This document shows, piece by piece, positions 24,757 to 50,871 of a stretch of DNA of 64,000 nucleotides. This DNA is from Diadema antillarum. Its lineage: Eukaryota. The DNA is taken from assembly GCF_040938485.1 (NCBI RefSeq), contig NW_027270978.1:310001-374000 (forward strand). Direction: 5' to 3'. Under the pieces are notes generated by a model. That model was not told the DNA's origin. It was given only the letters and a program-made list of their open reading frames with translations, and did no database searches. The translations under genes and the position numbers were made by a program. How positions within the stretch are numbered: the stretch's first letter is position 1; every line of letters starts with the position of its first letter.

Positions 24757-25738
24757 CCGCATCAACATCCAAAGCAGTTATTGTCATGAAACTGGAGGAA
24801 ATAAGGCTGTTTTCTTCAATTTCTCCTTCATAATGTGATGAAGCAAAAACAGGCGGGTTATCGTTTATGTCTTGAATGAAAATTTGAATGATTGCCCTGG
24901 ACTGCTGGGGGATATCTCCATGGTCACTGGCAGTCACAGTTAATGTATAGTGGGACACTGTTTCACGGTCTAGCTGCAAGCGGGTGTGTACCTCTCCTGA
25001 ATTTTCATTGATTTCAAACTCAGGTACATCATCCATGCTGTAGCTTATTTCAGCGTTGGAACCCGCATCACCATCGGAGGCCGAAACTTGAACAACAACA
25101 TTGCCAATGGGAACAGATTCACTAACGAACGCACTGTAAGTCGAGTTTTGGAAAATAGGTGCGTCATTCCTTGTATCTGTAATCTGACTCGTTATATTTA
25201 CAGGGATGGGCTGCTCAAATATGGGGGTGTGGTCATTGCGATCGTCAACATAAACGGTCAGGTGGGTGGTGGTAGCTTTTGGTGGTGTGCCGTGGTCAGT
25301 CGCAGTGAGACGAAATGTGTGGGATTCTATCGTTTCTCTGTCGAGAGCCATTGTCGTCATTATCAGACCTGTGTCTGGATTGATGTCAAACATGGCTCCA
25401 CTCCGAGCATCCGATTGAGCCGTCATGCTGTAGGTGAGTCGGCCGTTGTCACCATCATCATTGTCGGTTGCCGTGATCGTTGTCACGATATATCCAGGAT
25501 CCTCATTTTCAGGAACTCTCCGTACATACAACATGCTGTCAAACGAGGGGTTGGTATTTTGGACCTGTCGTCTGTATCGGTCCGAAACAAGTTTACTATG
25601 ACCAGACATCTCCCAAAGTGGCCTCACTCTTGTTTGACTTGTACTTTGTCTAAAATGTCCCACATGGACATTGAAGGTGGCAAAACTTTCGCCGTGTAGA
25701 ATGGTAGCAACTACCACCAAACCGAACAGGAACAACAT
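24757..25738 (-). CDS. CELSR copy B: orphan miniaturised exon 1 (signal peptide, short prodomain, RYRR, EC1, EC6, start of EC7); candidate alternative first exon of copy A
   Basis: Open frame of 327 codons + 1 nt, homologous to A exon 1 with two in-frame deletions. Canonical donor GATGCGG|gtaagt at the same position and phase as A. No exon-2 homolog between 19000 and 24750. Confidence 0.75.
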
Positions 25739-26378
25739 CACGACCCCTGTTGGAATCTCCCAAACACTAAAAATCAGTTTGTGTAATAAACACAGTATTA
25801 GTTGCCTGCAACAAATGTCGCACAATTAGAATGATTGAAACAATTATGATGGTACCTTGTTTTCATACTAAACATGCACACACTAGATAAAATCAGAAAG
25901 AGATTGTGGAGAGAGCGATTGGTTATTTTCTGCGAGGAGAGGTAATCTGAGAGGTAGGCTCCGCCCACAAAGTTCTTCCAAACTCGCCCATTGGCTCAAA
26001 TCAAGCCTGAAGTTTGTAAGAGACGGTTGTACGCTCCCCGGTGATTTGTCAGTGTCACGTTCTCTTGGTGCGCCCCCATGGAGTCGTACGCAGAGCAGAC
26101 CGGCGGAGGAAAGAGACTTTCTCCTACCAGATACAGCTTGCACTTGCATCACCTGTGACGAGTTTTAAAGCGGAATTTCGTGATAGCAGGCTGCTCAAAA
26201 GCCTTGGAAGACGAAACGCATTGCTTTCAATTCCAGTTTGAAGAACTGACTTACTTTGTCGGAACATTTCGATCAGCGAGATGACCAAATCATAATATTA
26301 TGTGACGCTTGCTGGAGGCCACGGATGCTGCCGAACATCAACTAAAGTCAAGTGGAAGAAAATTTATCGGGAGCCGTG
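25739..26378. promoter_or_regulatory. Putative bidirectional promoter between head-to-head mini exons B and C
   Basis: 640 nt between divergent ATGs; non-repetitive; GC box ctccgccc near 25960. Confidence 0.45.
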
Positions 26379-27348
26379 ATGTCGTATCTGTTCTCTTTGT
26401 TGGTGGTTGCTGCCATTTTGCATGGCGAAGTTTTTGCAGCCTTTAACGTTAATGCGGCAGAGTTTAGACAGAGTATAATTAGAAGTCAGAAGAGGAAAAT
26501 CTTGTCCGATAAACTTGTTTCTCATCGATACAGACGACAGGTTCAAAATACCAATCCTTCGTTTGACAGCACGATCTATGTACGAAGAGTTCCTGAAAAT
26601 GAGGATCCTGGGTATGTTGTGACAACGATGACGGCAACCGACAATGATCATGGCGACAACGGGCGGCTCACCTACAGCATGACGGCTCAATCGGATGCTC
26701 GGAGTGGAGCCATGTTTGACATCAATCCAGACACAGGTCTGATAGTGACAACAGTTGCTCTCGACAGAGAAACGATAGAGTCTCATACATTTCGTGTCAC
26801 TGCAACTGACCACGGCACACCACCAAAATCTGAAACCACCAACCTGACCATTCATGTGGACGATCGCAATGACCACAACCCCATATTTGAGCAGCCCATC
26901 CCTGTAAATATAACGAGTCAGGTTACAGATACAAGGAGTGACGCACCTATTTTCCAAAACTCGACTTACAGTGTGTCCGTCAGTGAATCTGTTCCCATTG
27001 GTCATGTTATTGTTCAAGTTTCAGTCTCTGGTGGTGATGCAGGATCCAATGCTGAAATAAGCTTCAGCATGGATGATGTACCGGAGTTTGAAATCAATGA
27101 ACATTCAGGAGAAGTACACACCCGTTTGCAGCTGGACCGTGAAACAGTGTCTCAATATGTATTAACTGTAACTGCCACTTACCATGGAGATATCCCCCAG
27201 CAGTCCAGCGCAAGCCTTCAAATTTCCATTGAAGATATCAATGATAATCCACCTATCTTTCCTACATCGCATTATGAAGGAGAAATTGAAGAGAACTGCC
27301 CTCTTTACTCCTCTGTGCTGACAATAACTGCTTTGGATGCTGATGCAG
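26379..27348 (+). CDS. CELSR-like copy C, exon 1 (miniaturised, same architecture as B)
   Basis: ORF 26352..27371; signal-like MSYLFSLLVVAAILHGEVFA, RYRR|QVQN, EC1 and EC6. The donor at the homologous position is GCAG|gcaaat (GC, non-canonical). Confidence 0.8.
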
Positions 27349-27734
27349 GCAAATTTCTGTTGTTTGTATAAGATTTTTACAATAATTTGGATTTTGACCC
27401 AGAAGATTGATTCCCATCGCTTTAAAGGCAGCTTTGTCGTATTTCTTGTTTGTTTGTTTGTTTGTTATTGTTTTTTCAAAAAAGAAAAAGTTCTCTTTTT
27501 TATGTACAGGTATGGAGTGGGGAAGACACATCATAGATAAAATAATGATACCAAACTTTTTATTTGGCAATAAAAATGACCCATTTTTCAATGCCGTGAT
27601 ATTGGCATGCACATACAACATACAGACTGAAATAAAAAGGAAGCTAGTCATATGTGGATTTACTTAACATGAAACAATACTCCAGTATCTTTTTCAGATG
27701 TAATTCTCTACAAATATATATACTCTGCAGTGAA

Positions 27735-27738
27735 TATA

Positions 27739-27788
<50 letters not shown>
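27735..27788. repeat. (TA)n microsatellite
   Basis: Direct reading. Confidence 0.9.
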
Positions 27789-27793
<5 letters not shown>

Positions 27794-28067
27794 CTGAAAT
27801 TGTTTAGGAGTGCTTCAAAAAGCTAAAAGATGCACTTTACTCCTGGTGTCCACCCTACTTTTAGTGACACAATTCATGATACACTGAGGAGTTGGATTAA
27901 TGCTTTACAGATGAGATTGAAGATCAAATATAGCTTTGAAGAATTCTGTGCATAATGACAGCACACAAGAGAGTACCCCAAACAGTAGAAATTTAACAGT
28001 GCTGCTGAACACTGAAAATTTTGAATGTGCGTGTGTGTGTTCATAGCAATGCATGAAGATGCTACTA

Positions 28068-29183
28068 CAGTACGTATCAAAATAAACGCAACAAGATTTG
28101 ATTTAAAAATTGTGAAGATTGTGTTTACACCAAAGTGAGTAGCAACATCTTAAAACCACATATCTCCTCTTTCCAATGATATCTTATTCATTCGTACACG
28201 GTCATGGATGGCTGAGTAATCATTCTTTTTGGACAAAGAGTCAAATTGGACTTGGGACCAAGTTTAGGCACTGCAAGAATCAGTGCACCTTATTAGAAAT
28301 TAACTAAACAAACGGAATAATGAAATTAATTTTAATGACATTAATGATCACAATTAATGAAATTAATGAAATTAATGATCGAAACTTACCATTGTCTTCT
28401 TTCGGATACTAGTATCTCTTTTTAACATTACATCCCATGCCCCTCAACATGGCCACCATTTCTTTCCACACAAAGATTAGCTCTTTTCTCCATCTCACGC
28501 ACAGCCCTGGGAATCATTTGGGCTTGGTGGCGTAGAGCTTCAAACTCATCAGTGATTCTTTGTCTCAGAGTTGCAATGTCAGGTGGAGGGGTAATGAACA
28601 CTTTGCTCTTGAGATAACCCAAAAGAAAAAAGTCACAAGTAAGATCCGGAGATCGTGGTGGCCACTCCACATCATGATACAAGGCAATCACCCGATTTCC
28701 AAATACCTCAGCCAATCTGTTTCTTACTGCAACTAGTCGATCGGCTGGTGCGCCATCCTGTGCCCGCCATATAGGCATCTGAACACACTCCTTTGTTGCA
28801 CAGGAAAATTTTCCATTAATTCAGGTATCACATTTCATTTAAAATTTGTAAGTATCCATTTCCGTTCATGTTGTTTTCAAAGAAGAAGGGCCCTAGGAGC
28901 AAACCGTTCCACAAAATCCAGAACAGACATTCAGCTTTTCTCTACGAAAATCGACGTCATAGTTGAATGCAGAAACTGAAACTTGGTCCCAAGTCCAATT
29001 TGACCCACTGTCCAAAAAGAATGATTACTCAGCCATCCATGACCGAGTAAGAATAAATAAGATATCATTGGAAAGAGGAGATATGTGGCTTTAAGATGTT
29101 GCTACTCGCTTTGTTGTAAAGTTAACACAATCTTCACAAATTTGAAATTAAATCTTGTTGCGTTTTTTTTTAAATACGCACTG
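28068..29183 (-). mobile_element. Internally deleted Tc1/mariner element (DD41D/rosa-like, about 200-bp TIRs) in intron 1 of copy C
   Basis: TA|CAGT...ACTG|TA ends; long TIRs 28068-~28265 and ~28979-29183; transposase remnant QDGAPA..WPPRSPDLT-CDFFLLGYLK in ORF 28428..28778. Confidence 0.9.
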
Positions 29184-29484
29184 TATATGTTGTTACCTAG
29201 TATACACAATGCACTGAATGCTTCACCTTATGCTCATTTAATGACCGTGCACTATTCTATATAGGCCTACCTGCAAAAACTGAAGACTTCTGTTTTAGTT
29301 TAATGACATATTCATCTCTTGACTGTCCATGATATTACAAGGAAATGATTATTATAAGAACTACAGGTAATATAGAACTCAGTTTTGGGTAAAAAGAAGA
29401 GAAATCTGTAATAATGATGGATTTTTATTCAATCTAAAGCAGTTCTAGTCTCTTCTCTTATTACTATTTTTTTTTTTTTTGCAG

Positions 29485-30250
29485 GATCAAATGGTGAAGT
29501 AAGGTATACTTTTGAAGGAGGCTCTGATGCAGATGGGCGGTTCATCATAGATGAGATGTCGGGCACTGTTCGTGTCGCCTTATTGCTGGACCGCGAGTCA
29601 GGGGCTGAGTATGAGTTGGTGGCATATGCTTATGACCAAGGTATTCCTTCATTGAGAACGGCAGTGCAAATCACTGTGGAAATCCTCGACGTCAATGACA
29701 ATCCACCATCATTTACCCGGAAGGAGTACTTCTTCACAGTCAAGGAGAATCGTGTTCCAGGGGAATGGGTGGGTGAAGTGACTGCCCTTGATCCGGATTC
29801 CCTAGATAATGGCCATATCAGGTACACCATCTTGGATGAAGATCTTTTCCCTTTTGAGGTACATTATGCGTCCGGGATGATCACTACACTGGATATACTT
29901 GACTATGAATCTCGCAGAGAGTATGAGCTTGTCATTCGCGCTATCAATGTACCATATTTTGCTGATGTGATCGTTCACATCGGTGTGACGGATTACAATG
30001 ATAATATGCCTATTCTGTATGACTTTATGATTTTTTTTGAATAGCTATGAAGGTATCTTTTATGAAGGTGATGTCGGAAAGGTGCCTGCAACAGATCCTG
30101 ACATTTCAGATGTGCTGTGGTACTCTATTATACGCGGAAACGACAACTATCATCTAATCTTGAATGAATCGACAGGTGGAATAAGGCTTAACCCGTATCT
30201 CCGCAGACGACTCCTACCTCAGACTATTGAATTCATAGTACAAGCATCTG
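29485..30250 (+). CDS. CELSR-like copy C, exon 2 (EC7-EC9), interrupted by a +1 T at 30031-30038
   Basis: Acceptor gcag|GA, donor TCTG|gtgagg. 766 nt versus 765 nt in A exon 2. ORFs 29556..30044 and 30037..30267 join if one T is removed. Confidence 0.85.
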
Positions 30251-30628
30251 GTGAGGACTATCTTTAAACTGACTTTTTTGTGTTACTGAAAGTCTATGTT
30301 TAGCTGATCACTATATTCCAGATTTTCTCTAAACAGGGCACTTCTATGATATGATAATTGCATGATATATATCCATTAGATTCATACTGACAACCAATGT
30401 AGAAAAAAATAAAGCTCACATATGTTTTTCTTTGAAAACAAGATTTTGCCCATGGTTCTGTCTTAGTTCATACAATACCATTATGCAGATGTGCTATTTA
30501 ACTTCCACTACTGAATCAGAGAATGCAGAAAATATTGGAAAAACTTCAGTAACACCAATAGGCTTTGACGCTCTTTTACAGTATTGAAAATGTTATCTCC
30601 ATTTCATCTTTTCTTCGTTCATTTATAG

Positions 30629-31249
30629 ACGGATTAAATGTAGTGGCAGCACTTGGCAAGTTCCACGTGTTCATAGTGACTGCTGACATGCTTGCCAACA
30701 GTGTGACGGTTCGCATGGAGGGCATTCACTCCAGCGAGTTCCTGTCCTCAAAGTTGGTCCGCTTCACGGAAACCATGGAGAGGATCATCCCCACACACCG
30801 GGACTTCATCCACATCTTCAGCATCCAGACAGAAGGTCCCGGACTCCTGAGCATCACCTTTGCGGCGCAGCGCCCCGACGGCACTTTCTTCACCTCTCAG
30901 CACCTCCAAGAAAGGATATACGTCAAACGAAGCCAGCTCTCCTCGGCGCTTGGTGCCACCGTTCTGCCGTTCAGTGACGACCTCTGTCTGCAGGAGATAT
31001 GCAGTGGCTTCCACCAGTGCGTGGCAACGGTCAGCTCCTGGACTCCAGGTGAGGTCATTGCCACTGCAACGGTGATCTTCCACTCCGTCCATCCCGAGAT
31101 CCACTACAGCTGTGTCTGTCCTCCAGGGTATACAGGAAACTACTGCCTCACAGAGGTTAACTTCTGCTACTCGAGCCCTTGCGCCAATGGAGGTACCTGT
31201 GTCCAGAAAGAGCAGGGGTACACTTGCTTGTGCCAAGATGGATTTACAG
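30629..31249 (+). CDS. CELSR-like copy C, exon 3 (membrane-adjacent/Flamingo-box region, EGF1, EGF2)
   Basis: DGLNVVAA..DMLANSVTVRM..DDLCLQEIC..CPPGYTGNYC..CYSSPCANGGTC; tag|AC acceptor, ACAG|gtaggc donor; 621 nt. Confidence 0.9.
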
Positions 31250-31633
31250 GTAGGCTACAGAATATATGCATACTAAAAATGTGTGCCATTCATTAGGAAG
31301 TCTTTTATTGTGTGTGTGTGTGGAGGGTGAGGGGGTTGGAAGTGGGAAGCGAAGATGAGAGAATAGAAAAATTTGAATGGAAAATTAAAAAGAAATGTAT
31401 TGTAAAGCATTACATTTTCAAGACCATGATTCAGGCCTCTTTCTGGAGAGTTCTTTATTATGTCCCATGAGGTACATAATTATAATGTACAAACATTGAC
31501 CATTGTTGAAGTTTTGCAATGTCTACGAGGTGTCTAAAATGGAATTTGATTTATAGATGTCTTCACATACTTGAGTATGTATTTCAGTCACTGAAGATTT
31601 TCCAAGGATAAAGGCACTCGATGGGATCCAAAC

Positions 31634-32010
31634 CAGGGCTGGCGGAGCGTTTTCAAAAGGTGGGGGCCACTTCCGGGTTTCATGAGCTAACAAAAAAAAA
31701 AAAAAGCCTTCAGCGCAACTTCTGGTGGCACTTCTAGGTTTCTTCGGCTGAGAAGCCACAACAACAACAGCAACAACAACAACAACAAAAAAAAAGGTCT
31801 TCAACCCCCCTCCCCCCCAAAAAAAATAACCTTACTGCGCTCACACTTCAAGGTCTATATTTATTTTTTGAGTGCCACTTATGCACTTCCGGGGTAAAAA
31901 AAGTGGGGGTGGGGGAGGGCCCAAAGTGGTGACACCTTATGTATTCCTTTGTATGGTGCAAAGGGGCCTAAGCGCCCCCCCCCCCGGCATCCCCGGTTTC
32001 GCCGGCCATG
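31634..32010. mobile_element. MITE-like dispersed repeat
   Basis: cagggctggcggagcg ... ggtttcgccggccatg imperfect inverted termini, poly-G/C internal tracts. Confidence 0.55.
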
Positions 32011-33949
32011 CAAACTTGGGACCTGTAATTGAAAAGTCAGGAGTCTCATCAACTATGCTGCAGTGCCCCCACAAAATTTATTCACAAATATTAGATGGAC
32101 TCCTCATATATTGTGTTATCACAAACACACTCGCACACACGCACACATTTCTAAAATTTGCCTTTGCCATCTGTAACAAATGGTACATTTCATATGATAA
32201 TGGTGGATGATTATTTTTTTGTTGCAAGTGAGTAATGGGAGTGAGTATATTATGTTGTAGATTTTGATCTCATTTGGTAGATTCAACTGAGTTACCATAC
32301 ATCTAGTAACATGCTAACTGATTTCAGACTCATTGATGAGGATGCAATTGTATCTCTGATGCTGTGAATCAGGCAAAGTATATCAAGTGAAGTATCCAAA
32401 CAGCAATATATCAGATTCATATCAACTATTTCCAGAGACCTACTCTTGACTGAATTGAGAGGTCTGCTGGTGTTGCTCAGCTTCAGTCAATGGATACTGC
32501 AAAGATTTGATGGTACAGAGACGTGATTATGTTACATATGGGTCAGTTAAACAGAAGCTGCAATATGAACAAATCAAATTTCTGTTTTCTGTTTCTTGAA
32601 GTGGCACATCTTATTTGTTCTAAGTCTCTCTTATAACTACTCATCACTTGGACTGCTGGTAGCAGCTCCTCTTGAAAATCACTCCACCGCCTACACCTGC
32701 CTTGGTGTACGTGCGCTTGTGTGAGTGCGTGGAAATGTTCGTGTTTCTCCATCTGGTTTTTATCACTCTTGTATTATGCTACCCTGCAAATTAATCTTAG
32801 ATATAAAAACAACATTACAAATTCTGTTTGAACCCATGCCAAATGTTAAAATTCACTGTTTCCTTCAGAGAGCAGAGTTTGAAACCTCTAGGGTTCTTCA
32901 GGGTTTAACAGCTCTTCACTGCACTGAAAATGTGAGGGTAGGATGATATTTTGACCGATTTACCGGTACTATAGAGTGCCACCTTGAATCGAGAAGGTCA
33001 GAATGAAGTGGCATCTTTTGTGAAGTTGATCTTATTTCAGTGAGCTTGCAAGTTTTCCTGTGCAAATGATGATATCTGGGACCAGTTGAGATTATGAGAG
33101 TGCACTGTACACCATAGTGAAATGATTATGCTTATGTGTGTTTATTTCTTGTCACACTTTATGCTTATCTTTTTCATCTGCCTTTTGCCATATATTAGTT
33201 TGGTTCCCTTTAACATCCCTGAATTGTTTTTGTATGTACTGATTCTATTCTTATGTGCTGACAACAACAGTGTCCTGTGTACAACAAGTGTGTTCAGGAT
33301 CTTGAAGGAATTCAAACTAAGTTTCCCCATAATTAGTGACATTTTGATGATGTGATTTTGTGATGATGGAATTTTGTCACATATCATCTTGCTATCTCGA
33401 ATCAGCTCCTCAGAATTTCATTACATATGTGATATATCTGGATTCAGTGTATATGTAGAGAAACTGAGATTATATGGAACTGATTCATTCATTAAGTTTG
33501 CACAAGATCAAAAAGACATCTATACCAAAATGTGCCAATTTGAGATAGAAAAAGGAACTGCAACAATGTGTTGCTGATTTAAAGGACACGTAGGAACTTC
33601 ATTGTCTTCTGAAATATATCGACTTGTTAAGAATTAGCTGCAAATCAAGCATGTAGGGTCTTTTGAAAAATCTGCATAAATTCATCATGAATAAAAAAAA
33701 AACCAACAACAACTTTGTTCTTCTAAAGGTTTCATTAATCCAAAACAAAGTAAGGTTCGTAATTCTGAATGTCTGTTAGTACGCACCTTTTTAAAATTTT
33801 CAGATTAATAAACCTTCAAAATATCAAACTTTTGAAATAATGAATCTGTTTTCATTTTTGGATTAACCAATCTTTGGAATTATCAACACCATACCAAGTA
33901 TTAGCCCTCAATTTGTTATGACTTTGTTGTTGTTGTTGAAATGATTCAG

Positions 33950-34121
33950 GTGTAAACTGTGAGACAGAAAACTACTTTGGTGGAGAGTTTGATTGGATCT
34001 GCCATGACCTTGACCTCTCTGATGGACCCTACTGCAAGATGAGAACACGGAGCTTCATGGGGGATTCACTTATGATGTTCCCCTCCCTAACTCAGAGAGT
34101 GAGGTTCCAACTGTCCGTAAG
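33950..34121 (+). CDS. CELSR-like copy C, exon 4 (shortened EGF3, start of LamG1)
   Basis: GVNCETENYFGGEFDWICHDLDLSDGPYCKMRTRSFMGDSLMMFPSLTQRVRFQLSV; cag|GT acceptor, AG|gttaga donor; phase 1 to 2. Confidence 0.8.
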
Positions 34122-34526
34122 GTTAGAATTGGATTGCCTTTTCCATGAGTATTTCAGTTTTCATACAATTAGATATCTTGTGTGTATGTACCACACAATG
34201 ATAGCATAGAACTCTGTGTGCACATAATCATAAGTGGTGGTAAAAGTAGGGAAGATAGTTTTTTATGGAGCAATTGCACAGCACACCACACATCCCCCCA
34301 AATTACGACGATACAAGTCATTGATGGACTTTACTGGAAAGGAAGATGAAGAAGGAGAAGAGAGGTTGTTAAGTTAAACATATTCATATGCACACATGTA
34401 TTCATGTGTGTGCATATATATCTTATATAAAGGGTTGGTGAATGTTAGTGAAGGGGGAAAGAAGTCAGAGTTCACTTTCTGCGGTCTGAAACTGAATCAT
34501 AGTGAGTGATTCATTCTCCTGTTAAG

Positions 34527-34731
34527 CTTTGCCACCCGCAAGCCGAGTGGAATGATCTTCTATAATGGATGCTACAACCAGCAGCATGACTTCATCGCCC
34601 TTGAGATCGTCGACGATCAGGTGCAGTTCTCCTTCTCGACAGGAAGTGATGTCACCACGGTAACGGCCAGCAGAGTGGGAGGAGTCAGTGACGAGCAGTG
34701 GCACACGGTTGTCATCGAATACTATTTGATG
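34527..34731 (+). CDS. CELSR-like copy C, exon 5 (LamG1)
   Basis: SFATRKPSGMIFYNGCYNQQHDFIALEIVDDQVQFSFSTG..GGVSDEQWHTV; phase 2 to 0. Confidence 0.88.
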
Positions 34732-35037
34732 GTAGGTACCATGGTACTATTTGATGGTTGGTGTGTTCAGTCAATTTTTATATGTGCAACAATTTAATCG
34801 TGAATTGCGTCCTCGGTGATTCCTGTCACCCGTGTACTTTCTGTTTAGTCCACAGTTGAAGAATTTTCCTTCCCTTAGAATACTACCCTACCACAATGAC
34901 TACATTATATTTGTAGTAAATTTTTTTTTTGTCACTATCGCAGAGATTGTGGAATTGAAATTCTACATTATGTTACATTTCTGGAATATATGTAATCTTT
35001 ATTAAGTGTGTATATTTATTGTTATTGATACTAACAG

Positions 35038-35147
35038 ACTGCTACCATTATTCTGGATGAATGCGACGCGGCCATTGCTCTCGCATATGACGGTGATCAC
35101 CCTGACTACAGCTGTGCTGCCTCAGCAACTGGGAGTGGGGAGTACAG
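35038..35147 (+). CDS. CELSR-like copy C, exon 6 (LamG1)
   Basis: TATIILDECDAAIALAYDGDHPDYSCAASATGSGEYR, matching the CELSR DxCD..NYSCAA motif; cag| acceptor, AG|gtaatg donor. Confidence 0.82.
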
Positions 35148-35274
35148 GTAATGGTGGTGGGGGGGGGGGGGGAGGTATGCATAAAATAATGTGCTACTTC
35201 TGATCTGACATCAACTGTGTTTGTTTGTTTGTTTGTTTGTTTGTTTGATTGTTTGTTCACTTCCATCTGAGAAG

Positions 35275-35597
35275 ATGGCTGGATAGCCCATATTCAGCTA
35301 TGCTAAACTGGTCTTCCATGGGGTCCAGTTGGATGTGAGGTGGGACCACTTCACTGGGTTAAACACCCTGCTCTTTGCGATGAATGAATAAAGCGGGATC
35401 TTTTACGTGCATGAGCTGTGACTCTCTCATACACGGTACCTCCGTTTTATGTCCTATCCGAGGGACAGAGTGTTTTGCCTCTTGCTAGAGGGGACGGTAT
35501 GTTTACACACAACATTGCTCAGTCCAGACTTGGGTTTGAACCCGGGTCCTTAGGATCGTGAGGCAGACGTGCTACCGACTGAACCAACTCACCGCCC
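35275..35597 (-). mobile_element. tRNA-derived SINE
   Basis: Reverse complement begins GGCGGTGAGTTGGTTCAGTCGG (A box) and contains GGTTCAAACCC (B box). The core resembles Nin/Deu-type SINE domains (recollection, not aligned). Confidence 0.7.
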
Positions 35598-36020
35598 TGC
35601 GTATGTGTCATGTTCTTTAAATGAAAATGACACATGTTCTCTAAATGACAGATTTCTGTCAATTTGCTACATTTTTGTCAGTAGCAAAGCATAGCCCAGT
35701 GTGTAGAATGTGTAGAGCAATTACTTCCACAAGGCAGACCGCAGTATGGGTATGCATAGGGTTAAATCTGAGATGTATTCATAACCTAATAAAGTAGGAT
35801 AAAAAATGGTAAAATGAGAAAGTATTTTTGTCTCATACTGATTCATAATGTGGCTTGCAAGGATGTATATTACAATTGACACTAAGCTCCACAGTTTAGA
35901 CCCTTGTAAAAGTAGTTTGCTTTTGGTTTGGGTTATTGTTTAATTTCAAACAAGAACAAACTTATACACAACATGACATACTTGGATACATATCCAAAGT
36001 GCAGTATCAGATACAGAGTA

Positions 36021-36678
36021 TACTGATAGTGAACATTTTAGCATTATTGTTTGCAGTGATGGTATTTGAATCGATGTGCATGAATAAAAGGTGAAATAAT
36101 AGCTTTACAAGAGTTGCTACACACTGTACATCTCAGTGTTATTTGAAATTTACTTCTTGTTTCATGAACCCCACTGTATACTTTGCCAAGTTTGACTATC
36201 TCATTTTACATTAATAACGTAATACCTATGTGCTTTTGAATACTGATAGTGAACATTTTAGCATTATTGTTTGCAGTGATGGTATTTGAATCGATGTGCA
36301 TGAATAAAAGGTGAAATAATAGCTTTACAAGAGTTGCTACACACTGTACATCTCAGTGTTATTTGAAATTTACTTCTTGTTTCATGAACCCCACTGTATA
36401 CTTTGCCAAGTTTGACTATCTCATTTTACATTAATAACGTAATACCTATGTGCTTTTGAATACTGATAGTGAACATTTTAGCATTATTGTTTGCAGTGAT
36501 GGTATTTGAATCGATGTGCATGAATAAAAGGTGAAATAATAGCTTTACAAGAGTTGCTACACACTGTACATCTCAGTGTTATTTGAAATTTACTTCTTGT
36601 TTCATGAACCCCACTGTATACTTTGCCAAGTTTGACTATCTCATTTTACATTAATAACGTAATACCTATGTGCTTTTG
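36021..36678. repeat. Three essentially identical 220-bp tandem copies
   Basis: tactgatagtgaacatttt starts at 36021, 36241 and 36461. Confidence 0.92.
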
Positions 36679-37205
36679 TGGTTTGAATTTGTTGATTTCA
36701 TTCAGAATTAGTCCCTGTTAATGTCAAGACGCCCTCATGCTCTTTTTAGAGAGTGATAAATTCTAATCAGGATGAAAACATTCTATATGTTTTCATTTTC
36801 ACTTAAGTCAATTAAATAGAGATAGGTGGTCAATTCATTTGTGATGTTAAACACAAAAAATTAGATTTCTACATGGTTATTCTTTTGAAAAACACCATTC
36901 AAATTCATTTTTCAAGTCTATTCATTTTATTTATCAGAAGAATGTAATCTAACAAAATGTTTGCATTTCATATACACATCAGAACATAGTGTAAATATAA
37001 CAAAGCATGTAACAAAAATACAAAAAGATGATACCAGATTGAGAAATACAATTCCCTTTCTTTCAAGGTTAATTGACTTAAGTAGTCCTCTAATATGATT
37101 GTTTGTCTTCATTGTCAAAAAAAATGAGAGATTTTTATTTTTTATTTCTTTATCCTTTTGTGTTTGCAGGGCACTAAAACATCTTTCAATTTATTCTATC
37201 TGTAG

Positions 37206-37501
37206 GTTGTTGGACCTGACTGGACCATTCTTTCTGGGCAATCTTCCAGACATCTCCAACTCCAGCCGAGCTCAGGGGGAGGATTTGGACTTTGACGGTT
37301 GCATCCGGGACGTCTACATCGACAACGAGCTCCTCGATCTCGCCACCAACGTGGAGGACGTGGGCACCCAACCCGGCTGCCCGCACAAGTCCGACTTCTG
37401 CGAGTCAGACCCCTGTCACACGGGAGCCACTTGTGAGAGCGGATGGGACCGCTACACCTGTCACTGTTCCTCCCAGAGTGGAGGGGTTAATTGCCAGGAA
37501 A
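37206..37501 (+). CDS. CELSR-like copy C, exon 7 (end of LamG1, EGF4)
   Basis: LDLTGPFFLGNLP..FDGCIRDVYIDNELLDL..GCPHKSDFCESDPCHTGATC..CQE; phase 2 to 1. Confidence 0.88.
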
Positions 37502-38521
37502 GTAGGTTCTGTCTGTCGGCAATTTCTCTTGTCCCTAACAATGCCTCTTTTTTGGTATTACACAATGATTAATGCTTTGCTCTCCAAAGTGTGACTTTTG
37601 ATGCATCCGCCTGATGCACCAAGTGTAGCTTGTGGCACAAATGCAAGTGCAGTGCATAAAGCCAGTAAAATACATAGGATGTGATACATCGTGCTTTCTT
37701 CTATACCCATCATTGCACAGAGTTCTGACACTTCTTGGAAGACAACAAAGATGAATTAAGTCACAACTGGTATAAACAATTTATCCTGGTCTGCACAGCT
37801 TATATTCAGTGTCTGTAAAATCAGTCGGATGGTGTGGAGTTTTGCTCACAGTGCATCAAATAAAAAATAATGAACAATGTCATGCCTGGATTGTAGGTGT
37901 ATTTCTGTGAGCTCACATTTGTCTGCAGGAAATCTCAAATAATGTCAGTAATTCTATTGATATCATTCTATCCATAAAGAAACAGGATCTTTAGTAGATA
38001 AATGTTTTTAAAAAAGATCTGATTGCAAGAACTTATCTCAAATATGATATGTAGAACATTCTTTGGAAAGATGCAGCATTAATTTATGCCATTTTTTCCA
38101 GAAGATTCCATTTGGTGGCAGTATTAGAGCATTTGTCAACTTTGACCTAAAACTACCACTGAGTGAAGCGATCTGGAGTGAAAGTGGTCAGCAGAATTAT
38201 TCTCATGTCATTGTCTTTGCATTTAATCATATTTTTCTCTTTATCTGTACAAAACAGGAAATGCAAACATATTGGTCATGAATTGCGTATATCACTGTGA
38301 CTAGAAATTTTAAACCTTTACATATATTTTTTTTTTGATACCATGTGCAGTCTTGTTTTTTCCTTCTTCTTTCCCACTCCTTATTCTACTTCCTTTATCC
38401 CTTCCTCTTTTCCTTCTTCATCTTTCTCATTTTCATCTGTCTTATATGAGTAAAAATATGTTATATATTGCAATTGTATGATCTTACGATGAGTAGTATT
38501 GTTTTTTTTTCCATGTTGAAG

Positions 38522-38685
38522 CCATGTTAGATCCTGTTCATGTCAAAAATGATGGCTACATGACCTTTGACACCAATGAGACAATCACCCTATCGTGGAC
38601 CAATCACATCGCTTTCCGCACCAGGGACCCCAGTGGAGTCTTGATGTTTCTTGAGTTGACAAATGATGCCAACATTCGAATTGAG
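38522..38685 (+). CDS. CELSR-like copy C, exon 8 (LamG2)
   Basis: TMLDPVHVKNDGYMTF..WTNHIAFRTRDPSGVLM..IRIE; donor GAG|gtttgt. An alternative in-frame acceptor exists at 38531. Confidence 0.8.
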
Positions 38686-39842
38686 GTTTGTTTTGGGAGA
38701 CACACAAATGAAATATCCAAACACATCTTTTATACTATGTCTGTCTTAGGACATTCAACGTAATGCAATGCAATTGCACAATGCAATAGCTTATAAATAC
38801 GAGTCTACACTCCTTCCTAGGTAGCTGTATCTCATAGATTCTTCTTTTTTTATCTGCAAAGGTAGTGTGGGTTATTTTTTTTTCTCTCTCTCTGATGTGG
38901 TAGATCATGGATGGTGTGACATCCTGTAAGCCTGTAAAATGCCTTCTTCTCCTGTTTGTGGGACATTTTAAGAGTTTTATTGCAAAATGAGCTAACTCCA
39001 TTCTCGTTAAGTTGAGACATTTGTGATTAAAGCTGCTAAAAAACAAAGAAAATAATAAAGTACAGGATATATTTAATCATGACTTCCAAGATATTCCTTG
39101 TTATGTCACAAGTGAAGTGTTACTGGAAAGGATTAATTTTGCTCGATCTGATGATGGACTTACATGTACTTTAAAATGTTTAGAAATGGTGCCTAGCTCA
39201 TTTGCGATAAAAGTCTTAATTTATTGAACATGTGATAAGAGCAGCAAATGGTAGTTCTCGATATACAGCAGAAAGAAAGAACTGAATATCTAACGAACTG
39301 TTCACAGACTATCAGAAATATAGAACATAGAAGATTTGCATCTTCAAAGAGTTTCCAATCACTCTGACAGGCCACGTAGCAGGACGGTGCACCTTGCAGT
39401 CTAGGCTGAAAGACACAAAACATTTCTCTATTGAGATCTCAAACCCTTGTATACTTGATTGTTTTTGCTTCCATCTAGTATTGAGCTCACTCTTGCACAC
39501 CTGTCTAAGTCTTATGGTCTAATTAGGGTGCATTAAATGGATATCATTATTTTTTTGTGGTATACATTATAGAATGTGTCTTCTTCCTCGTATCAGTTAG
39601 AATGGAAATACTGTGGGAAGATCTTTGTGGTTCAAAAGTCTTCATCAGGTGGTATATTGCCAAGTTGGAGCCAATTAACTTTATTGAATTTGGCAGAGTA
39701 ACAAGTAGTGAATGTAAGTTTACCCGCGGAAGACGAGTCCCGCGTATACTCAGGCAGGTGTCTATAGGAAATGTGTGTTGTAGCAAAATTGGCCTATTCT
39801 CAACGGGTTAATGAAGCATGATAAAATTGTATATCTTATGTG

Positions 39843-40206
39843 CAGAGACCCCAACTCTCCTGCTTTCGACGGGAGATCTCCCGCCGAAAGCCCAGTTTTG
39901 CAAAATCTCCCGTTCTCCTGCTTGAGTTTTAATTTCTCCCGCCCTGGCTCTGTGTCTCCCACTTGAAATGATTTCTTACTTAATTTCATCGTACGTTGAA
40001 AAATGAGCCGTAGATAACACAAGAGAGCATCTAGAATCCTAGAGTTTCCAGGGTCCGCTAAGGGCCCTGGATCCCTGCTGCAAGGAATTTCGCACTTCGC
40101 GCTCGTGATGTGCGAGAAGCGCACATCAACTTTGAGTCTCCCGTTTGCTAGGGGTTTCAGGAGGGAGAATCTCCAGATTAGAAGGTGCTTGGGGTTGGAG
40201 TCTCTG
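39843..40206. mobile_element. MITE with CAGAGAC..CCAAC termini and a 6-bp flanking direct repeat
   Basis: tatgtg|cagagaccccaac ... gttggagtctctg|tatgtg. Confidence 0.7.
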
Positions 40207-40299
40207 TATGTGTGTTGAGACACACCCTGCGTGTGTAAGCAAAAGGCTAAATTCAACATGTTGTTCCTAAAGAGTCTCATTGTTTGGCCCCCCCTGCAG

Positions 40300-40446
40300 T
40301 TGGTCGATGGCTACATCCACTACGTCACCAGCTCAGTCAGTGTCCAGCTTGACCAGCGACCAGTCAGTGACGGGGAGTGGCATGACTTCTTGGCAGAGTG
40401 GGAGAATAACACAGTGATTCTCTCAGTGGATTTTGATTGGGACCTG
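40300..40446 (+). CDS. CELSR-like copy C, exon 9 (LamG2)
   Basis: LVDGYIHY..PVSDGEWHDFLAEW..LSVDFDWDL; cag| acceptor and |gtgagt donor; phase 0 to 0. Confidence 0.85.
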
Positions 40447-40913
40447 GTGAGTGTCCATGAGGAGACACTTTCAGCTAAGCTTTGTACTTGTTTAACAGAA
40501 TTTTAGAATTGAAAAGTCGTCCATTTAGTAATAGCACATACTCTCCAACATTCTTGAAAAGAATGTTGGTAAAGGTAAAATAACAGTTATTGTTTAGATG
40601 AACACATGTTGCACATTGAGGCTGACTTCAGTGTATGAAATGAAATAAGACAACTTATACATGTAGAACAGTGAGCTCCATATATCTATAAAAAATGATA
40701 AAAAGTAAAGGCAGTTTAAAGGGTTTACATGTTTCCCAGTGTTTTCTAACAACAATTATATCTGTTAATTGTTTGTTCCTTCGGACGTGAATTAATGATG
40801 GTGCCATGGTCCTTGGTCATATCGCCATGTTTGCTATCTTATGTAGATATTAAGTCCTTATGTTCAGAGAGGTGTGTAAACTCCAGTCTAATGAACATTT
40901 CCTGTACTAACAG

Positions 40914-41024
40914 AGGTCTGTTCGAGCCATGGACAGCCTTGACGGAGAGAGGGTGATCAGAGTGACGCTGGGAGGGATGTTGACAGAGGGCGCTCTCACC
41001 AATGGCTTCGCTGGATGCCTAATG
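40914..41024 (+). CDS. CELSR-like copy C, exon 10 (end of LamG2)
   Basis: RSVRAMDSLDGERVIRVTLGGMLTEGALTNGFAGCLM (LamG GFxGC motif); phase 0 to 0. Confidence 0.8.
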
Positions 41025-41694
41025 GTATTGTTTCTGTCATCTCACCAGTGTGTTGATGACTGTGGGATAAATTATATCTTGCTAAGTGAAATAACCGGTA
41101 GTATGAAAGTAGCATGAACATGGAGTGTGTAGATGTAGGTTTTATTGCATGACATCACAGGACCCATTGAATATTCATGATCTCCTTAGGAAGCCATAGT
41201 TCAGAGATGAAACATCTCAGATGAATAAATGTATCAACAACCAGCTCGTTATTTTCATTTCAGATTCCAATCAAGAATAGCATAAATTTGAATGTAATTG
41301 AATTGAACATTGACTTTTGCAGTTTTGTATTCCATTATCCAAGTACTTGTATTCCATTTGATCTCATTCCCTTTTGAAGTTTTAAGTTTATTACTATTTA
41401 TCTTCACATTTTTATATTGCATAATACATTACAAAAGAAACATGCATGAATACATAATAAAAGGTACCAGAAAATAGCATGAATGCTAATCAAGTCTGAT
41501 ACTTATTACAAAGGTTATAAAAAGGTAGTATGTACAGTACAATGTATAGCTCTAGTTTGAAAATACATGAAACATGAACATATTTACAACTTTTTACATC
41601 ATAATACATTTGAGTTGAAAACTCGACGTGATAATACATGTACATCTTCTTTTGATCCCCTGTGCCCCTCCATCCTACCCAACCCTACCCCTAG

Positions 41695-41854
41695 GGAATG
41701 TCCATCGGTGGTAGCCCCCTGGACCCTGCCGTGGGGGCAAGGACCAATGTGGAGGATGTCTGCAATGCCCCAGACTCCTGCCTGGATGCAGACTGCCCCA
41801 CCCACAGCCAGTGTGTGGATCTGTGGGACCTACATGAGTGCCGTTGTGACAAAG
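41695..41854 (+). CDS. CELSR-like copy C, exon 11 (EGF5)
   Basis: GMSIGG..NVEDVCNAPDSCLDADCPTHSQCVDLWDLHECRCDKG; phase 0 to 1. Confidence 0.87.
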
Positions 41855-42553
41855 GTGGGCTTTTCTCCCACACAGGTTCCATCTTGATCCATCCACAGTC
41901 TGTCATAATTCTCCCAAACCACTGTTATTCTATTTTTCACTGGCATTTTAAATCATTATAATGTATTATCATTGCTCTCAGCTTCCAAGGATCAGACAAA
42001 AAACAGTGGAAATTGTAATGATTGTAGTAGACTATATAAGTTAGTCTGGCAAAAGCTTTGGGCATACCTAAATATATAAAATAAAATCTAGTAAAAGCTT
42101 GGGTTCTAAATAGATCACAATAAAAGTGATGGGAAAAGCAGATAAAAAGTGACTTTTCATTCACATTCATTATTAAGTTGCCATTTTCAGCAGCTCTCTA
42201 ATATATCTCTATCCAGAGTCTGTGTAATTCTGGTAAGTCTGTTTCATTCTTGTTTGAGGCAGCTGACAATATTTGTCGTTTTTGTTGTTGCTGATGAGTC
42301 TTTAGTACCGGTACTGGATAGTAATTTTTGAAGTAGCTCAGAGTGTGAGCTATACCTTGATGGGTAGGGCTTAAGTGCACACTAGGCATGTGGGATCAGT
42401 AGTGTTATGTCATATAACAACATGTATAGAGCTCATGAATAATAATGTATTGTACAGCACTGGAGAAGTTGGAGCAGCAACTCGTGATAACATTTGCGCA
42501 AACTTGATTCTTTAAATAAAACAAAATGGGGGCATTTTCAACTTCTTTTTCAG

Positions 42554-42813
42554 GTCATTTTGGCCCTGAATGCTTGTCAGCGTGTGAACTGGGTGCGTGC
42601 CAGCATGGCTCCACCTGTGACCTTTCTCCGGAGACAGATCTTGGCTACAGCTGCACCTGCTCGGAGCGTTTCTATGGCGACCACTGCCAGCACATGGTTG
42701 AAGAGTGCCCAGATGACTGGTGGGGATACCCGGTCTGCGGCCCCTGCGAGTGTGATGAGGACATGGGATTTGACCCCACTTGCAACAAGACCACAGGGGA
42801 ATGTCACTGCCAG
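42554..42813 (+). CDS. CELSR-like copy C, exon 12 (EGF6 and CPxxWWG laminin-type EGF region)
   Basis: GHFGPECLSACELGACQHGSTC..ECPDDWWGYPVCGPCECDEDMGFDPTCNKTTGECHCQ, a diagnostic CELSR motif. Confidence 0.92.
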
Positions 42814-43472
42814 GTAAGGACAAGGAGACTGGGACCTGGAAGCCGGATTGTAGACTAGAATATTGGACTTTACCAAAAAGAGAACACTTTTTTATCTCTT
42901 AAAAAAAAAATCATTTGAACTACATGTTGTAGCCTGTCTAGATCGTATGATTTATATGAAATGTCTCACACATAATCATCTAAAGCCAAACAACAAAGCT
43001 GTTTTGTGACTTCTTTCTAAGTCTAAGAATTTGGTACTGTCAAATGTATGAGGTTCCATTTCTGTTTGTTATCAGGTATAAGCACAAAAGGAGTATTATG
43101 CTATTCTGGCTATTTTTCTGATTAGTATAAGATTAGAAGTGTAAAAATGTTTCTTGACAATATTTCTGAAAAGAAATGTTTCATAATTACTGTTGCTGTC
43201 CCCTAGTTCTGTAACGGTATCCTTGTATTTGATTTTTTTTTAATCATTTGCTTGTTAAGCTACAAATGACCTTTCTTGGATGTGAAGGCATTGACATACC
43301 ACGAGGAAGAGAAAAGATGACTAAAAAAAATGAAACAACAATACCACTCAAACTTCCTGATTTGATATTCTACAGCAATGAATATTCCCTATGTATATTC
43401 CATTGTGAAGTCATATACCATTATTGTCAAATTTCATTGAAAGTGGTGTTGCATTTGACTCCTCCTACACAG

Positions 43473-43656
43473 GAACACTTCTACCGCCTTTCAGACAGTG
43501 ACACCTGTTACCCCTGTGGTTGCTATGAGGTTGGATCCTCCAGTCAAGACTGTGACCAACAGACCGGTCAGTGCTCCTGCAGGAGGGGGGTTAATGGCCG
43601 GCGATGCGATGCCTGTGATGACCCCCATGCTGAAGTCACAACCAGTGGATGCGAAG
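43473..43656 (+). CDS. CELSR-like copy C, exon 13 (laminin-type EGF)
   Basis: EHFYRLSDSDTCYPCGCYEVGSSSQDCDQQTGQCSCRRGVNGRRCDACDDPHAEVTTSGCE; phase 0 to 1. Confidence 0.9.
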
Positions 43657-43816
43657 GTAGTAACCTTGACCAGCTGAAACTATTTTCTTCTAGTTGATGT
43701 CCAATAAATGAACAGTGACCTTATGTTAGGATTTTTTAGAAATGTGCTTAGAGGTAACAGACATGGCTCATTAAATGATGTACACATAGGAAAACATTTT
43801 ATTTTTATTTTTTGAA

Positions 43817-43980
43817 CAGGGGTCAATTTCATGAAAGTCTTATGAGAGACTTTTGCTCACATGACACAATTATGACAGACTTCATGAAATGGATTTTACT
43901 TTTTTACATAGCTACATATGAGCAACTTCTGAGATTAATGTAAAGGCTTCTTTGTGATGACTTTATGAAACAGACCCCTG
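43817..43980. mobile_element. Short MITE (CAGGGGTC..TTTCAT ends)
   Basis: caggggtcaatttcatgaaagtc ... gactttatgaaacagacccctg. Confidence 0.65.
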
Positions 43981-44961
43981 GTAGATTAAAAAGTTTGGTT
44001 TTTAATGCCATCATCATTCAGTATTATAAATTGGGCTTCAGAATCTCTGCAATCTGATTGGTCAATTGTCAAGCATTGATTTTTACTGATCCACACTGAG
44101 CCATGCGTCCGGTAAAATCCGAATGCATGGCTCAAGTCTTGTATAGTGTTATAGGTGTACCAGATGCATGATGGGGAAAATGGTTGTATTTCATGAATTT
44201 ACAGGGCCCATTTTAAAACACAAATGATGCACAGGCCTATTTCGTGGATCAGTGAGAAATAGATGCTCTCGTTTAACTTTGGAACAGTCTAAAACCCACC
44301 TGCTGCACTCGTAGGTTTAAACAGTTCCAAAATTAAACTCGCGCATCCAATTCTCACCAATCCACTCTGTCCTGTGCATCATTTGTATACTATCTTTGAA
44401 TTATGAGTACTTGGTGTAACTTTTGATATACATCTCGAGTAAGATGAGACATACCATCACGATTTGCTGGGTAAAAAGTTTGTATGGAAATTGTTCACAT
44501 GGTAGACATCTGCCCATCTGAAAATGATTTGGGAGAATTCAGAAAGAGATATGTTTTTAGTACTTGTTTATGAGATGTTATCATACTTCACGTAACAATA
44601 TCACATTCCAGGACTCTGGCTGTGAAGCTGTAGTGTCCTAAGCACATGAAAAACACAAGCACACATATGCACAAAATACCACATGAAGAATTAGGAGATA
44701 AATTTTGCTGTAAACAGGAATATATAGACCAGATATATAAAAAAGAAAGAAAGAATTGCACAATACTTGTATATGGATAATTTCTTCTGCTACCATCAGC
44801 GCAGTATAAAACATTGGGCATTGCAAGTGCATACATAAAAGAATTGCCATAAACATACGTACCACTGTAATTTTCACATAGTGTGTGTTGGTGTTTTCTT
44901 TAATGTTATCCAAATTATTGTCCTTAAAATACTAATTGTATATGTTTCACATAGATAACTG

Positions 44962-45004
<43 letters not shown>

Positions 45005-45016
45005 TTCCCTCCTCAG

Positions 45017-45204
45017 TTATCCATGGATTCTGTCCCAAACACTTTGATGAGGGTCTCTGGTGGCCTAGAACCCAATGGGGCGGGACAGCAACCCTAGACT
45101 GCCCACGAGGGAGCTACGGCACTGCAACGCGTTCGTGCAACTTTGAAAAAAGATGGCAGATGCCAAATCTATCGAACTGCACCTTGGAATACATGTATAG
45201 GTAG
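45017..45204 (+). CDS. CELSR-like copy C, exon 14 (HormR domain), last recognisable exon; in-frame TAG follows directly
   Basis: VIHGFCPKHFDEGLWWPRTQWGG..CPRGSYGTATRSC..WQMPNLSNCT, then TAT AG|G TAG. This reads as either a donor at 45200/45201 or a stop ending at 45204. Confidence 0.85.
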
Positions 45205-45630: not shown

Positions 45631-46896
45631 TATAATGGATGGTTTGAAAGCTTTGAGGACTATATCCTGATGCTCTTGCTCAGTAACACTAAACCATCAA
45701 AGGTGAAATGTAATTCTCAGGAGGGCTTAAACTTAATCTTCCACCATTTGGAACTTGCATGCAAAATATTGAAAGGGTGTATATCAGGAAATTTGCCAGG
45801 CTGATAAGATTTGCTGAAATAAACAATAGCTTTGGAGTATTTTGTAATCAATGTATAAAACATTTTGTCGTAGCCACGATTGGATATGCTCAGGATTTCA
45901 ATCAATCAATATCAATATATATCATCTTTATTGATTTCTTTATTCATTTATTTATTTATTTTTATTTATTTATTCGTGTATTTGTTTTATGATGATTGAG
46001 ATGAATAAACAAATTGAATTGAATTGAATTGAATTGAATTTACTAATCTCTTTATGCATATGTGTGCATTTTTGTATGTACACATGTATGTACACAGAGT
46101 AGCTCATTTTCAAAGCAGCGTAAATGGATGGATTGACTGAAATCTGAAAACAGCTCCAAATATGCAAGATAGAGATTACTCATTGCAGTTTTGAACACAA
46201 AATAGTTGGTACTTGTAGTAACAGTAGTTGTAACGATAATAGTAGGTCCCTATGGACAGTGGCAATAATGACCTGTTTCATTTATTGTCATTATGGTTTT
46301 CCTACTTATATTATCAGTAGGAAAAACATATATATATTTTTATTAGTATTATCAATTCATTTTACCTTAAATTTGTTGATCTGAAGTTTCATTATTTTGA
46401 ATAAACACACATACTGTGCATGTGAGGTATCAAATGTTCCATCATCTCTTTTCTTGAGAAGCAGGAGTGTATTGTTTTAATGGGCGACAAATGTGGCTGA
46501 TGTATATGAGTGAATTAGTCTTATCGTTTAAAACCTTGAGCTAAACGTTTGTTTTTGTCAACACTGGTTTTTAATCGCACCTTTTTAAAGGGATTGTCTC
46601 AGTAAAAAACCTACAATAACGCCCCAAGTCTCAAATAAACAAACCTGCAAAAGTGTCATTTCCCTTACCAGCCAGTGAGTGGCATTTAATTTGTGCTAGA
46701 GCATGCACTTACCAGTGTGAATGCTTTGCTTGTTTTTCCAGATCATGTCAGGAAATCGATATTAAGCACAAAACAAATCTAAGTTGACTGAGGAAGCATC
46801 ACCTTTCTAACAGTTTTAACAAATAGTGTCCTTCCAAATACTGTCCCTACCTTAACAGGCTCACTCAATATAGCTGTACAGTGGTCTTTTGTAATA

Positions 46897-49479: not shown

Positions 49480-49557
49480 TCATTCTCCCTTGAATTTTGG
49501 CTTTCTCTTTTCCTTGAAAGCAATGAGACCCTCCATGCGATCCTGAGTCGGAATGAC
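49480..49557 (-). CDS. AUH: AUH-like methylglutaconyl-CoA hydratase, last coding exon
   Basis: [25 protein letters not shown], the AUH-type C-terminus. Confidence 0.9.
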
Positions 49558-50404: not shown

Positions 50405-50452
50405 CTGAGCATAGTAGGCTTCTTCAAATGCCAGTCCTGTTGCCAGATCGAC
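50405..50452 (-). CDS. AUH: AUH exon 8
   Basis: VDLATGLAFEEAYYAQ; cag|/|gtag sites; 48 nt. Confidence 0.9.
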
Positions 50453-50797: not shown

Positions 50798-50848
50798 CTC
50801 ATTTCCTTTGTTCACAGCTTTCTTCACCATTCTCAAGGCGATTGGACC
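50798..50848 (-). CDS. AUH: AUH exon 7
   Basis: GPIALRMVKKAVNKGNE; 51 nt. Confidence 0.9.
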
Positions 50849-50871
50849 CTGGAAAAAAAGAAACAAGGAAA

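Follow-up and report, generated by a model that had tools for sequence, protein, structure and literature searches.

Within a 64,000-nt stretch of Diadema antillarum DNA (RefSeq assembly GCF_040938485.1, contig NW_027270978.1, positions 310,001 to 374,000 of the forward strand), which we refer to as the window and whose numbering is used throughout, we analysed copy C, a locus at 26379–45204 on the + strand that descends from the CELSR/Flamingo/ADGRC family of adhesion receptors. We put at roughly 0.7 the probability that copy C is a real gene, which we detected only in Diadema, that represents a partial duplicate of the neighbouring gene A, has no receptor part and encodes a product that is probably secreted. 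The sequence itself is already known and is held in RefSeq under three accessions, XP_071485697.1 (the window), XP_071495430.1 (the other D. antillarum haplotig) and XP_072174166.1 (D. setosum), all of which are named as seven-pass receptors. The locus of XP_071485697.1 (L003) is identical to 16379–55204 of the window, whose contig is JBFRCO010000090.1 in GCA_040938485.1. We found no description of the gene in the literature searched, and a survey of echinoderm cadherins omits CELSRs altogether (PMC10734073).

Exon structure and encoded protein of copy C

The exons of copy C were transferred from the orthologous D. setosum locus, which has 14 GT-AG exons that translate exactly to the 1454 aa of XP_072174166.1. 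The transfer identified 14 exons in the window, which contains no N, with phases that chain from the ATG at 26379 to a TAG at 45202–45204, and a CELSR-derived protein of 1450 aa, in agreement with the initial annotation of this DNA, which had proposed 14 exons with chained phases and a product of about 1450 aa. The frame is broken at a single site, a run of eight T residues in exon 2. As had also been proposed, dropping one T, an edit made for analysis only, restored a coding sequence of 1450 codons, free of internal stops and closed by a terminal one, and the other two C sequences are in frame at this position, across which gene A is likewise continuous.

Domain order was read with Pfam on stop-to-stop open reading frames (ORFs) of the + strand. 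Between 26.3 and 45.2 kb these contained cadherins, a CELSR-type ninth cadherin, an Ig-like domain, EGF, a LamG/EGF/LamG/EGF series, laminin-type EGF and HormR. The cadherin array is of CELSR type, with four Cadherin matches and one to Cadherin_CELSR2_9th (5.5e-21), and comprises five repeats, not nine. An EGF/LamG/EGF/LamG/EGF/laminin-EGF block followed by HormR was evident both from the Pfam order and from colinearity with gene A, which continues to the residues NCT after HormR. The complete order is therefore that of a signal peptide, five cadherin repeats, the EGF/LamG block, laminin-EGF, HormR and a stop, and the exons that carry it are as follows.

26379..27348, + strand: exon 1; ATG, signal peptide (residues 1–22) and RYRR furin-like site; cadherin repeat EC1 fused to an EC6-like repeat and the start of EC7, with EC2–EC5 of gene A absent (404-aa alignment gap); Pfam Cadherin 1.7e-45
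29485..30250, + strand: exon 2; remainder of EC7, EC8 and the CELSR-type ninth cadherin; Cadherin 4.1e-29, Cadherin_CELSR2_9th 1.5e-10; holds the frameshift
30629..31249, + strand: exon 3; Ig-like (Ig_Shg-type) domain and EGF; Pfam EGF 5.2e-12, Ig_Shg 4.4e-6
33950..34121, + strand: exon 4; EGF-like, 57 aa; 90% identical to XP_072174166.1 by tblastn
34527..34731, + strand: exon 5; first part of LamG1; Pfam Laminin_G_2 4.5e-15
35038..35147, + strand: exon 6; middle of LamG1; 82.5% identical to XP_072174166.1 by tblastn
37206..37501, + strand: exon 7; end of LamG1 and an EGF, from Pfam and the exon map
38522..38685, + strand: exon 8; start of LamG2, from tblastn and the exon map
40300..40446, + strand: exon 9; LamG2; Laminin_G_2 4.2e-6; conversion-like patch
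40914..41024, + strand: exon 10; end of LamG2, from tblastn and the exon map
41695..41854, + strand: exon 11; EGF, from the exon map; conversion-like patch
42554..42813, + strand: exon 12; EGF and start of the laminin-type EGF, from Pfam and the exon map
43473..43656, + strand: exon 13; laminin-type EGF; Pfam EGF_laminin 4.8e-9
45017..45204, + strand: exon 14; whole HormR with its four cysteines kept, seven-residue tail TLEYMYR and TAG at 45202–45204; Pfam HRM 2.9e-11

Intron 6 includes three perfect tandem copies of a 220-bp unit (36020–36678).

A hydropathy scan of the encoded protein revealed a sole strong hydrophobic segment, residues 4–22 (Kyte-Doolittle peak 2.1), which is homologous to the signal peptide of gene A. 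Gene A has seven further peaks, whereas copy C has none of that strength, and its C-terminal TLEYMYR is not hydrophobic. The furin-like RYRR, at residues 50–53, is kept in all C sequences and aligns with RFRR of gene A. Since a signal peptide is accompanied by no other strong hydrophobic segment, the product of copy C is predicted to be secreted and should be an ectodomain without a membrane anchor.

The 3′ end of copy C

The initial annotation had seen no GAIN, GPS or seven-transmembrane (7TM) exon before the convergent gene AUH. Our searches by tblastn and profile hidden Markov model (HMM) bear this out and extend it to the whole 64-kb window on both strands, in which no coding sequence for these domains was found. 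The full-length CELSRs of Antedon and Saccoglossus, taken from a protein search with exon 3 in which four of the 150 listed matches were useful and the rest reflected swamping by multi-EGF proteins, matched every exon of copy C through HormR in tblastn and nothing beyond at E<1. When the 895 residues of gene A that follow HormR were used as the query against the window, including the 19 kb downstream of copy C, the best match had an E of 4.3 and no receptor exons were detected. A GAIN-7TM profile HMM derived from ten deuterostome CELSRs reached no E below 2.9 against the 2879 six-frame ORFs (at least 15 aa) of the window; as a positive control, the same profile detected each of the 11 exons of this kind in gene A, even those of 22–26 aa, at 1e-7 to 1e-47. 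Pfam matches to GAIN or GPS were absent from the C proteins P0271, P0272 (XP_071495430.1) and P0158 (XP_072174166.1). The secretin-type seven-transmembrane domain (PF00002) was not found in copy C by the same searches, and its hydropathy profile shows the signal peptide only.

The point at which copy C departs from its parent lies within the HormR exon. In gene A this exon is 197 nt long and ends in ...CAGAACACA|gtgagt. The alignment of copy C to it stops at AACTGCACCTTGGA, and the last 24 nt of the A exon and its donor have no counterpart in copy C. As the homology ends before A's donor, that donor was never part of copy C, and the AG|GTAGGC found at 45199–45206 is a chance GT rather than the ancestral splice site. 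Neither the TAG nor the run of five to seven codons before it (YMYR, YMYK or YMYMYK) is related to gene A; the terminal TAT AGG TAG described previously is present at 45196–45204. Truncation falls four residues past the last cysteine of HormR, so the HormR domain of copy C is complete. The TAG also closes the gene models of D. setosum and of the second D. antillarum haplotig, even though a 6-nt indel lies immediately upstream. The features that define this end are given below.

45189..45204, + strand: breakpoint of A–C homology, 24–25 nt before the position of A's exon-end donor; last codons and stop non-homologous
46400..46639, + strand: candidate poly(A) signals, AATAAA at 46400 and 46634, common to all three C loci

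The initial annotation had instead pointed to AATAAA at 45818 and 46004. Both are present in the window, but neither is conserved in D. setosum or on the other haplotig, and the two at 46400 and 46634 are the only ones that all three loci share. Over 45205–47130 the window haplotype differs from D. setosum by about 4% and from the other D. antillarum haplotig, to which 45423–46182 cannot be aligned, by 13–23%; this pattern indicates deep haplotypes, possibly trans-species, or structural variation. A conserved 3′ untranslated region (UTR) at 45.0–47.5 kb, suggested by a divergence from D. setosum of 3–5% compared with 9.6% in introns, was considered and rejected, since the 13–23% difference between haplotigs, together with the partly unalignable sequence, means that the closeness to D. 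setosum stems from deep haplotypes held in common and not from constraint. The 3′ flank also holds a 160-bp dispersed repeat (45472–45632), of which a 78% identical copy lies at 60129–60286.

Origin from gene A and selection on copy C

The parent, gene A (XP_071485724.1, 3034 aa), neighbours copy C on the same contig and on the opposite strand. For the exon comparison 30 exons of gene A were mapped, with its C-terminal part taken from another contig (L004). Intron positions and phases are common to the two genes, exons 9–13 of copy C have A's exact lengths (147, 111, 160, 260 and 184 nt), with a further match at exons 5 and 6; copy C is therefore a DNA-level duplicate, not a retrocopy. It spans 19 kb compared with 168 kb for gene A, and it has no equivalent of the pre-cadherin region (roughly 250 aa), of some 404 residues corresponding to EC2–EC5, or of anything after HormR. 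The two proteins are 62% identical over 1418 aa, and nucleotide similarity is confined to exons, as expected of an old duplication. For exon 2 the initial annotation had estimated 55–60% identity to gene A by eye, and this estimate holds, with tblastx giving 58–65% and the D. setosum exon 62%.

Identity to gene A is uneven along copy C. Exon 9 is 91% identical at the protein level (D. setosum), and exon 11 reaches 96% in protein and 92% in nucleotide sequence, with the similarity running 21 and 14 nt into the flanking introns, whereas identity falls to about 70% in exons 10 and 14. Together with an A-like tract in exon 1 (26524–26898, 83.5%), exons 9 and 11 indicate patchy gene conversion. The tracts over exons 11 and 9, at 41674–41868 and 40298–40454, are A-like far beyond the other exons (70–85% nucleotide identity), and in these two exons gene A of Diadema is only 60–64% identical to that of Lytechinus. 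This suggests that in Diadema A and C have evolved in concert at exons 9 and 11.

In a maximum-likelihood tree the three C sequences formed one clade inside the echinoid CELSRs (support 99/97 to 100/100), a position that, with the exon structure common to gene A, places copy C by descent in the CELSR lineage. With all columns included, copy C was sister to Diadema A (98/94). When the A-like exons were left out, copy C, Diadema A and Lytechinus A formed a trichotomy, and the duplication can thus be dated only to within echinoids.

As copy C could be either a working gene or the remnant of one, we evaluated the ratio of nonsynonymous to synonymous change (dN/dS, omega). Pairwise dN/dS was 0.27–0.37 between the window allele and D. 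setosum and 0.31–0.40 between the D. antillarum haplotigs, and it was below 0.5 in every 200-codon window. Branch omega was 0.30–0.35 on each of three branches. Against a neutral nonsynonymous fraction of 0.78, nonsynonymous and synonymous changes numbered 43:38 on the window allele branch (P = 7e-7), 64:52 on that of the other haplotig (P = 5e-8) and 116:109 on that of D. setosum plus the stem (P = 3e-18). Cysteine columns were invariant in 59 of 61 cases, set against 199 variable columns among 1450 overall (P = 0.012), and the frame has been kept across a protein divergence between A and C of 38%, in line with the long survival of the frame that the initial annotation had supposed. An omega of about 0.3 and conserved cysteines argue that copy C has functioned as a gene and is not an old pseudogene. 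An unprocessed pseudogene would be expected to have an omega near 1 and disabling lesions common to its copies, which is not what we observed; the lesions are limited to the window allele. These data favour purifying selection on copy C and its retention as a gene in two Diadema species.

The window allele carries two lesions, of which the second had been overlooked in the initial annotation.

30031..30038, + strand: run of eight T residues, +1 frameshift; ATATTTTTG is in frame on the other haplotig and in D. setosum
27349..27350, + strand: exon-1 donor, GC in the window allele (CAG|gcaaat); gtaaat on the other haplotig and in D. setosum

The RefSeq model of this allele, XP_071485697.1, is flagged "LOW QUALITY PROTEIN" and is 1380 aa long because it uses a cryptic donor after 27138 in place of the GC donor, with a loss of 70 aa, and because the frameshift was repaired. 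Neither lesion is found on the other haplotig of the same assembly, where C is intact on JBFRCO010000020.1 (XP_071495430.1, 1454 aa), nor in D. setosum, which is also intact; both have the 14 exons and the stop seen in the window, and all 13 of their introns are GT-AG. As selection is not relaxed on the branch of the window allele, its two lesions are recent or not real; this allele may be a null that arose recently, or an assembly error may account for part of its damage. The initial annotation had offered a soluble ectodomain, putatively a decoy or ligand, or a recently disabled paralog as alternatives. Each fits at its own level: the first suits the gene, with copy C receptor-less, bearing a signal peptide, intact in two sequences and evolving at an omega of about 0.3 on every branch, and the second suits the window allele, which may have been disabled recently.

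Several observations nonetheless weigh against a working gene with a secreted product. Besides the two lesions, the C stem branch is about 10 times longer than that of gene A, with protein change 8–10 times faster. Of the C residues, 7% differ between the two D. antillarum haplotigs, which calls for caution over the status of copy C as a gene, and the haplotigs diverge by 5.0% in exons and 4.2% in introns, that is, not less in exons. A look-up of RNA runs for 42500–45300 listed none, and a search for transcript-derived protein fragments of the C terminus returned only distant CELSRs. The sequence directly after the stop is very different between the two haplotigs, so that no conserved 3′ UTR can be claimed, and a short alternative tail spliced from the GT at the stop (AG|GTAGGC) is formally possible. 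Were copy C a dying or dead gene, a useless unprocessed partial duplicate in which the lesions of the window mark the onset of decay, then the frameshift, the GC donor, the RefSeq flag, the long branch and the exon divergence would all be explained, as would our finding no receptor-less C orthologue outside Diadema in searches with a C query, in which the next best match was the Lytechinus receptor at 60%. We nevertheless regard decay as unlikely, given that selection is evident on all three branches, that of the window allele included, that two sequences out of three are wholly undamaged, with canonical introns, and that cysteines and frame have been preserved through the divergence from gene A.

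The remaining alternatives concern the end of the protein. The GT at 45201, which is retained throughout the three sequences and makes a fair donor in the window allele, could join copy C to an unrecognised downstream exon encoding a short tail, an anchor or another module, and so leave the product extended or tethered to the membrane. This GT lies in sequence non-homologous to gene A, however, and is preceded by A rather than G in the other two sequences, while three independent RefSeq models stop at the same TAG, which is conserved in frame even though the codons before it vary by substitution and the 6-nt indel; with no CELSR-like coding sequence downstream in the window, we consider such an extension improbable. 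We give still less credence to the reading of copy C as an ordinary receptor with GAIN and 7TM exons at a great distance downstream, past both AUH and the gene after it; the only point in favour is that the window stops at 64 kb. The ancestral donor of the HormR exon is missing, with homology to gene A ending 24 nt short, GAIN and 7TM are absent from the following 19 kb, the next gene is the convergent AUH followed further downstream by a stretch, on the strand of copy C, read by eye as the first exon of a MAP kinase, and the models of D. setosum and the second haplotig also end at the TAG of copy C.

The neighbourhood of copy C, with copy B on the − strand, copy C on the + strand and AUH on the − strand, is kept in all three C loci.

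24738..25742, − strand: copy B, head-to-head duplicate of C exon 1, 85.8% nucleotide identity, similarity in the exon only
49480..58272, − strand: AUH (enoyl-CoA hydratase), convergent, 3′ end of the coding sequence near 49480; Pfam ECH_1; called as a gene in L003

Copy B is 84% identical in protein to C exon 1 and shares its deletion of EC2–EC5, but consists of that single exon only. RefSeq treats it as a gene, with a product of 293 aa in the window (24728–25609, − strand), one of 336 aa on the other haplotig (L002, 8348–9358) and a spliced 314-aa product in the D. setosum model (L001, 2415–9270). Further downstream, an 81-aa ORF at 63239–63481 (+ strand) resembles by eye the first coding exon of a p38-type MAP kinase and has no Pfam match. 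Divergence between the D. antillarum haplotigs over 16171–50758 is a mosaic, with 0.04% at 19.1–24.7 kb, 1.2% in the big exon of gene A, 4–5% across copy C and about 2% at 47.5–50 kb.

Copy C compared with known adhesion receptors

Copy C resembles CELSR/Flamingo/ADGRC receptors in that its domain order from the ninth cadherin to HormR is identical to theirs and its sequences nest inside the echinoid CELSRs; it differs from them in having no GAIN, GPS, 7TM or tail, and five cadherins (EC1 and EC6–EC9) rather than nine. Residues 180–1448 match the chain in PDB 8VY2, the extracellular region of mouse CELSR1 (PMC12038025). In that protein CADH1–8 are required for adhesion, and the region from CADH9 to GAIN forms a compact module held mainly by CADH9/GAIN contacts, the weakening of which enhances adhesion (PMC12038025). 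Compared with mouse CELSR1, copy C is without one partner of the CADH9/GAIN interface and without half of the adhesive array.

Soluble N termini, and a "trans" function that does not depend on the 7TM, are known as isoforms in other G protein-coupled receptors of the adhesion class (aGPCRs) (PMC11039983; PMC3776922; bioRxiv 10.1101/2023.02.18.529090), and of the aGPCR genes that one of these papers tabulates, about half give mRNAs for the N terminus only (PMC11039983). Copy C is like these isoforms in that, judged from its sequence, it would encode a helix-free ectodomain that bears a signal peptide and is cut short by a premature stop, not by GPS cleavage. Such isoforms, however, arise from the receptor gene itself, through variant splicing or retained introns. 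Copy C is not the output of a receptor gene that is alternatively spliced, retains an intron or terminates early; it is a separate 14-exon locus with an ATG of its own, on the strand opposite to gene A, that is fixed in two species and evolves independently.

We propose that a partial duplication of gene A at the DNA level gave rise to copy C with A's intron positions retained, and that the duplicated segment, or a later deletion, ended inside the HormR exon. On this view GAIN, the GPS at which cleavage occurs, the seven helices and the tail in the cytoplasm never belonged to copy C. It would have been left with A's signal peptide and furin-like site, EC1 joined to EC6–EC9, and the whole EGF/LamG/laminin-EGF/HormR block, a product that, bearing a signal peptide and no other hydrophobic segment, we infer to be secreted. 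This soluble protein may engage receptor A or its partners without signalling, and its likeliest role, by analogy with the systems above, would be that of a soluble partner or competitor in contacts of the Flamingo ectodomain. A more specific version, which we hold only tentatively and consider doubtful as a whole, is that copy C is a stand-alone gene for a secreted "trans-only" Flamingo ectodomain that binds its counterpart in A and modulates adhesion in planar polarity. Conversion from gene A at EC1 and exons 9 and 11 would then keep the contact surfaces matched to the receptor while the remainder evolves fast.

Adhesion GPCRs are thought to act in two ways, by signalling through the seven helices and, independently of these, through their large outer part. 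CELSR/Flamingo is the core adhesion receptor of planar polarity, and its helix-independent mode is hard to isolate experimentally. A gene for a shortened CELSR outer part alone would be a naturally separated form of that mode, and copy C fits this description. Its structure suggests that a partial duplication ending just past a domain boundary can yield a folded, secretable product at once. It also follows that the three RefSeq entries carry the name of a seven-pass receptor for proteins without such a part, and that the entry on the contig of the window rests on a damaged allele. If copy C does act solely in trans, it would provide a natural experiment that parts CELSR adhesion from signalling.

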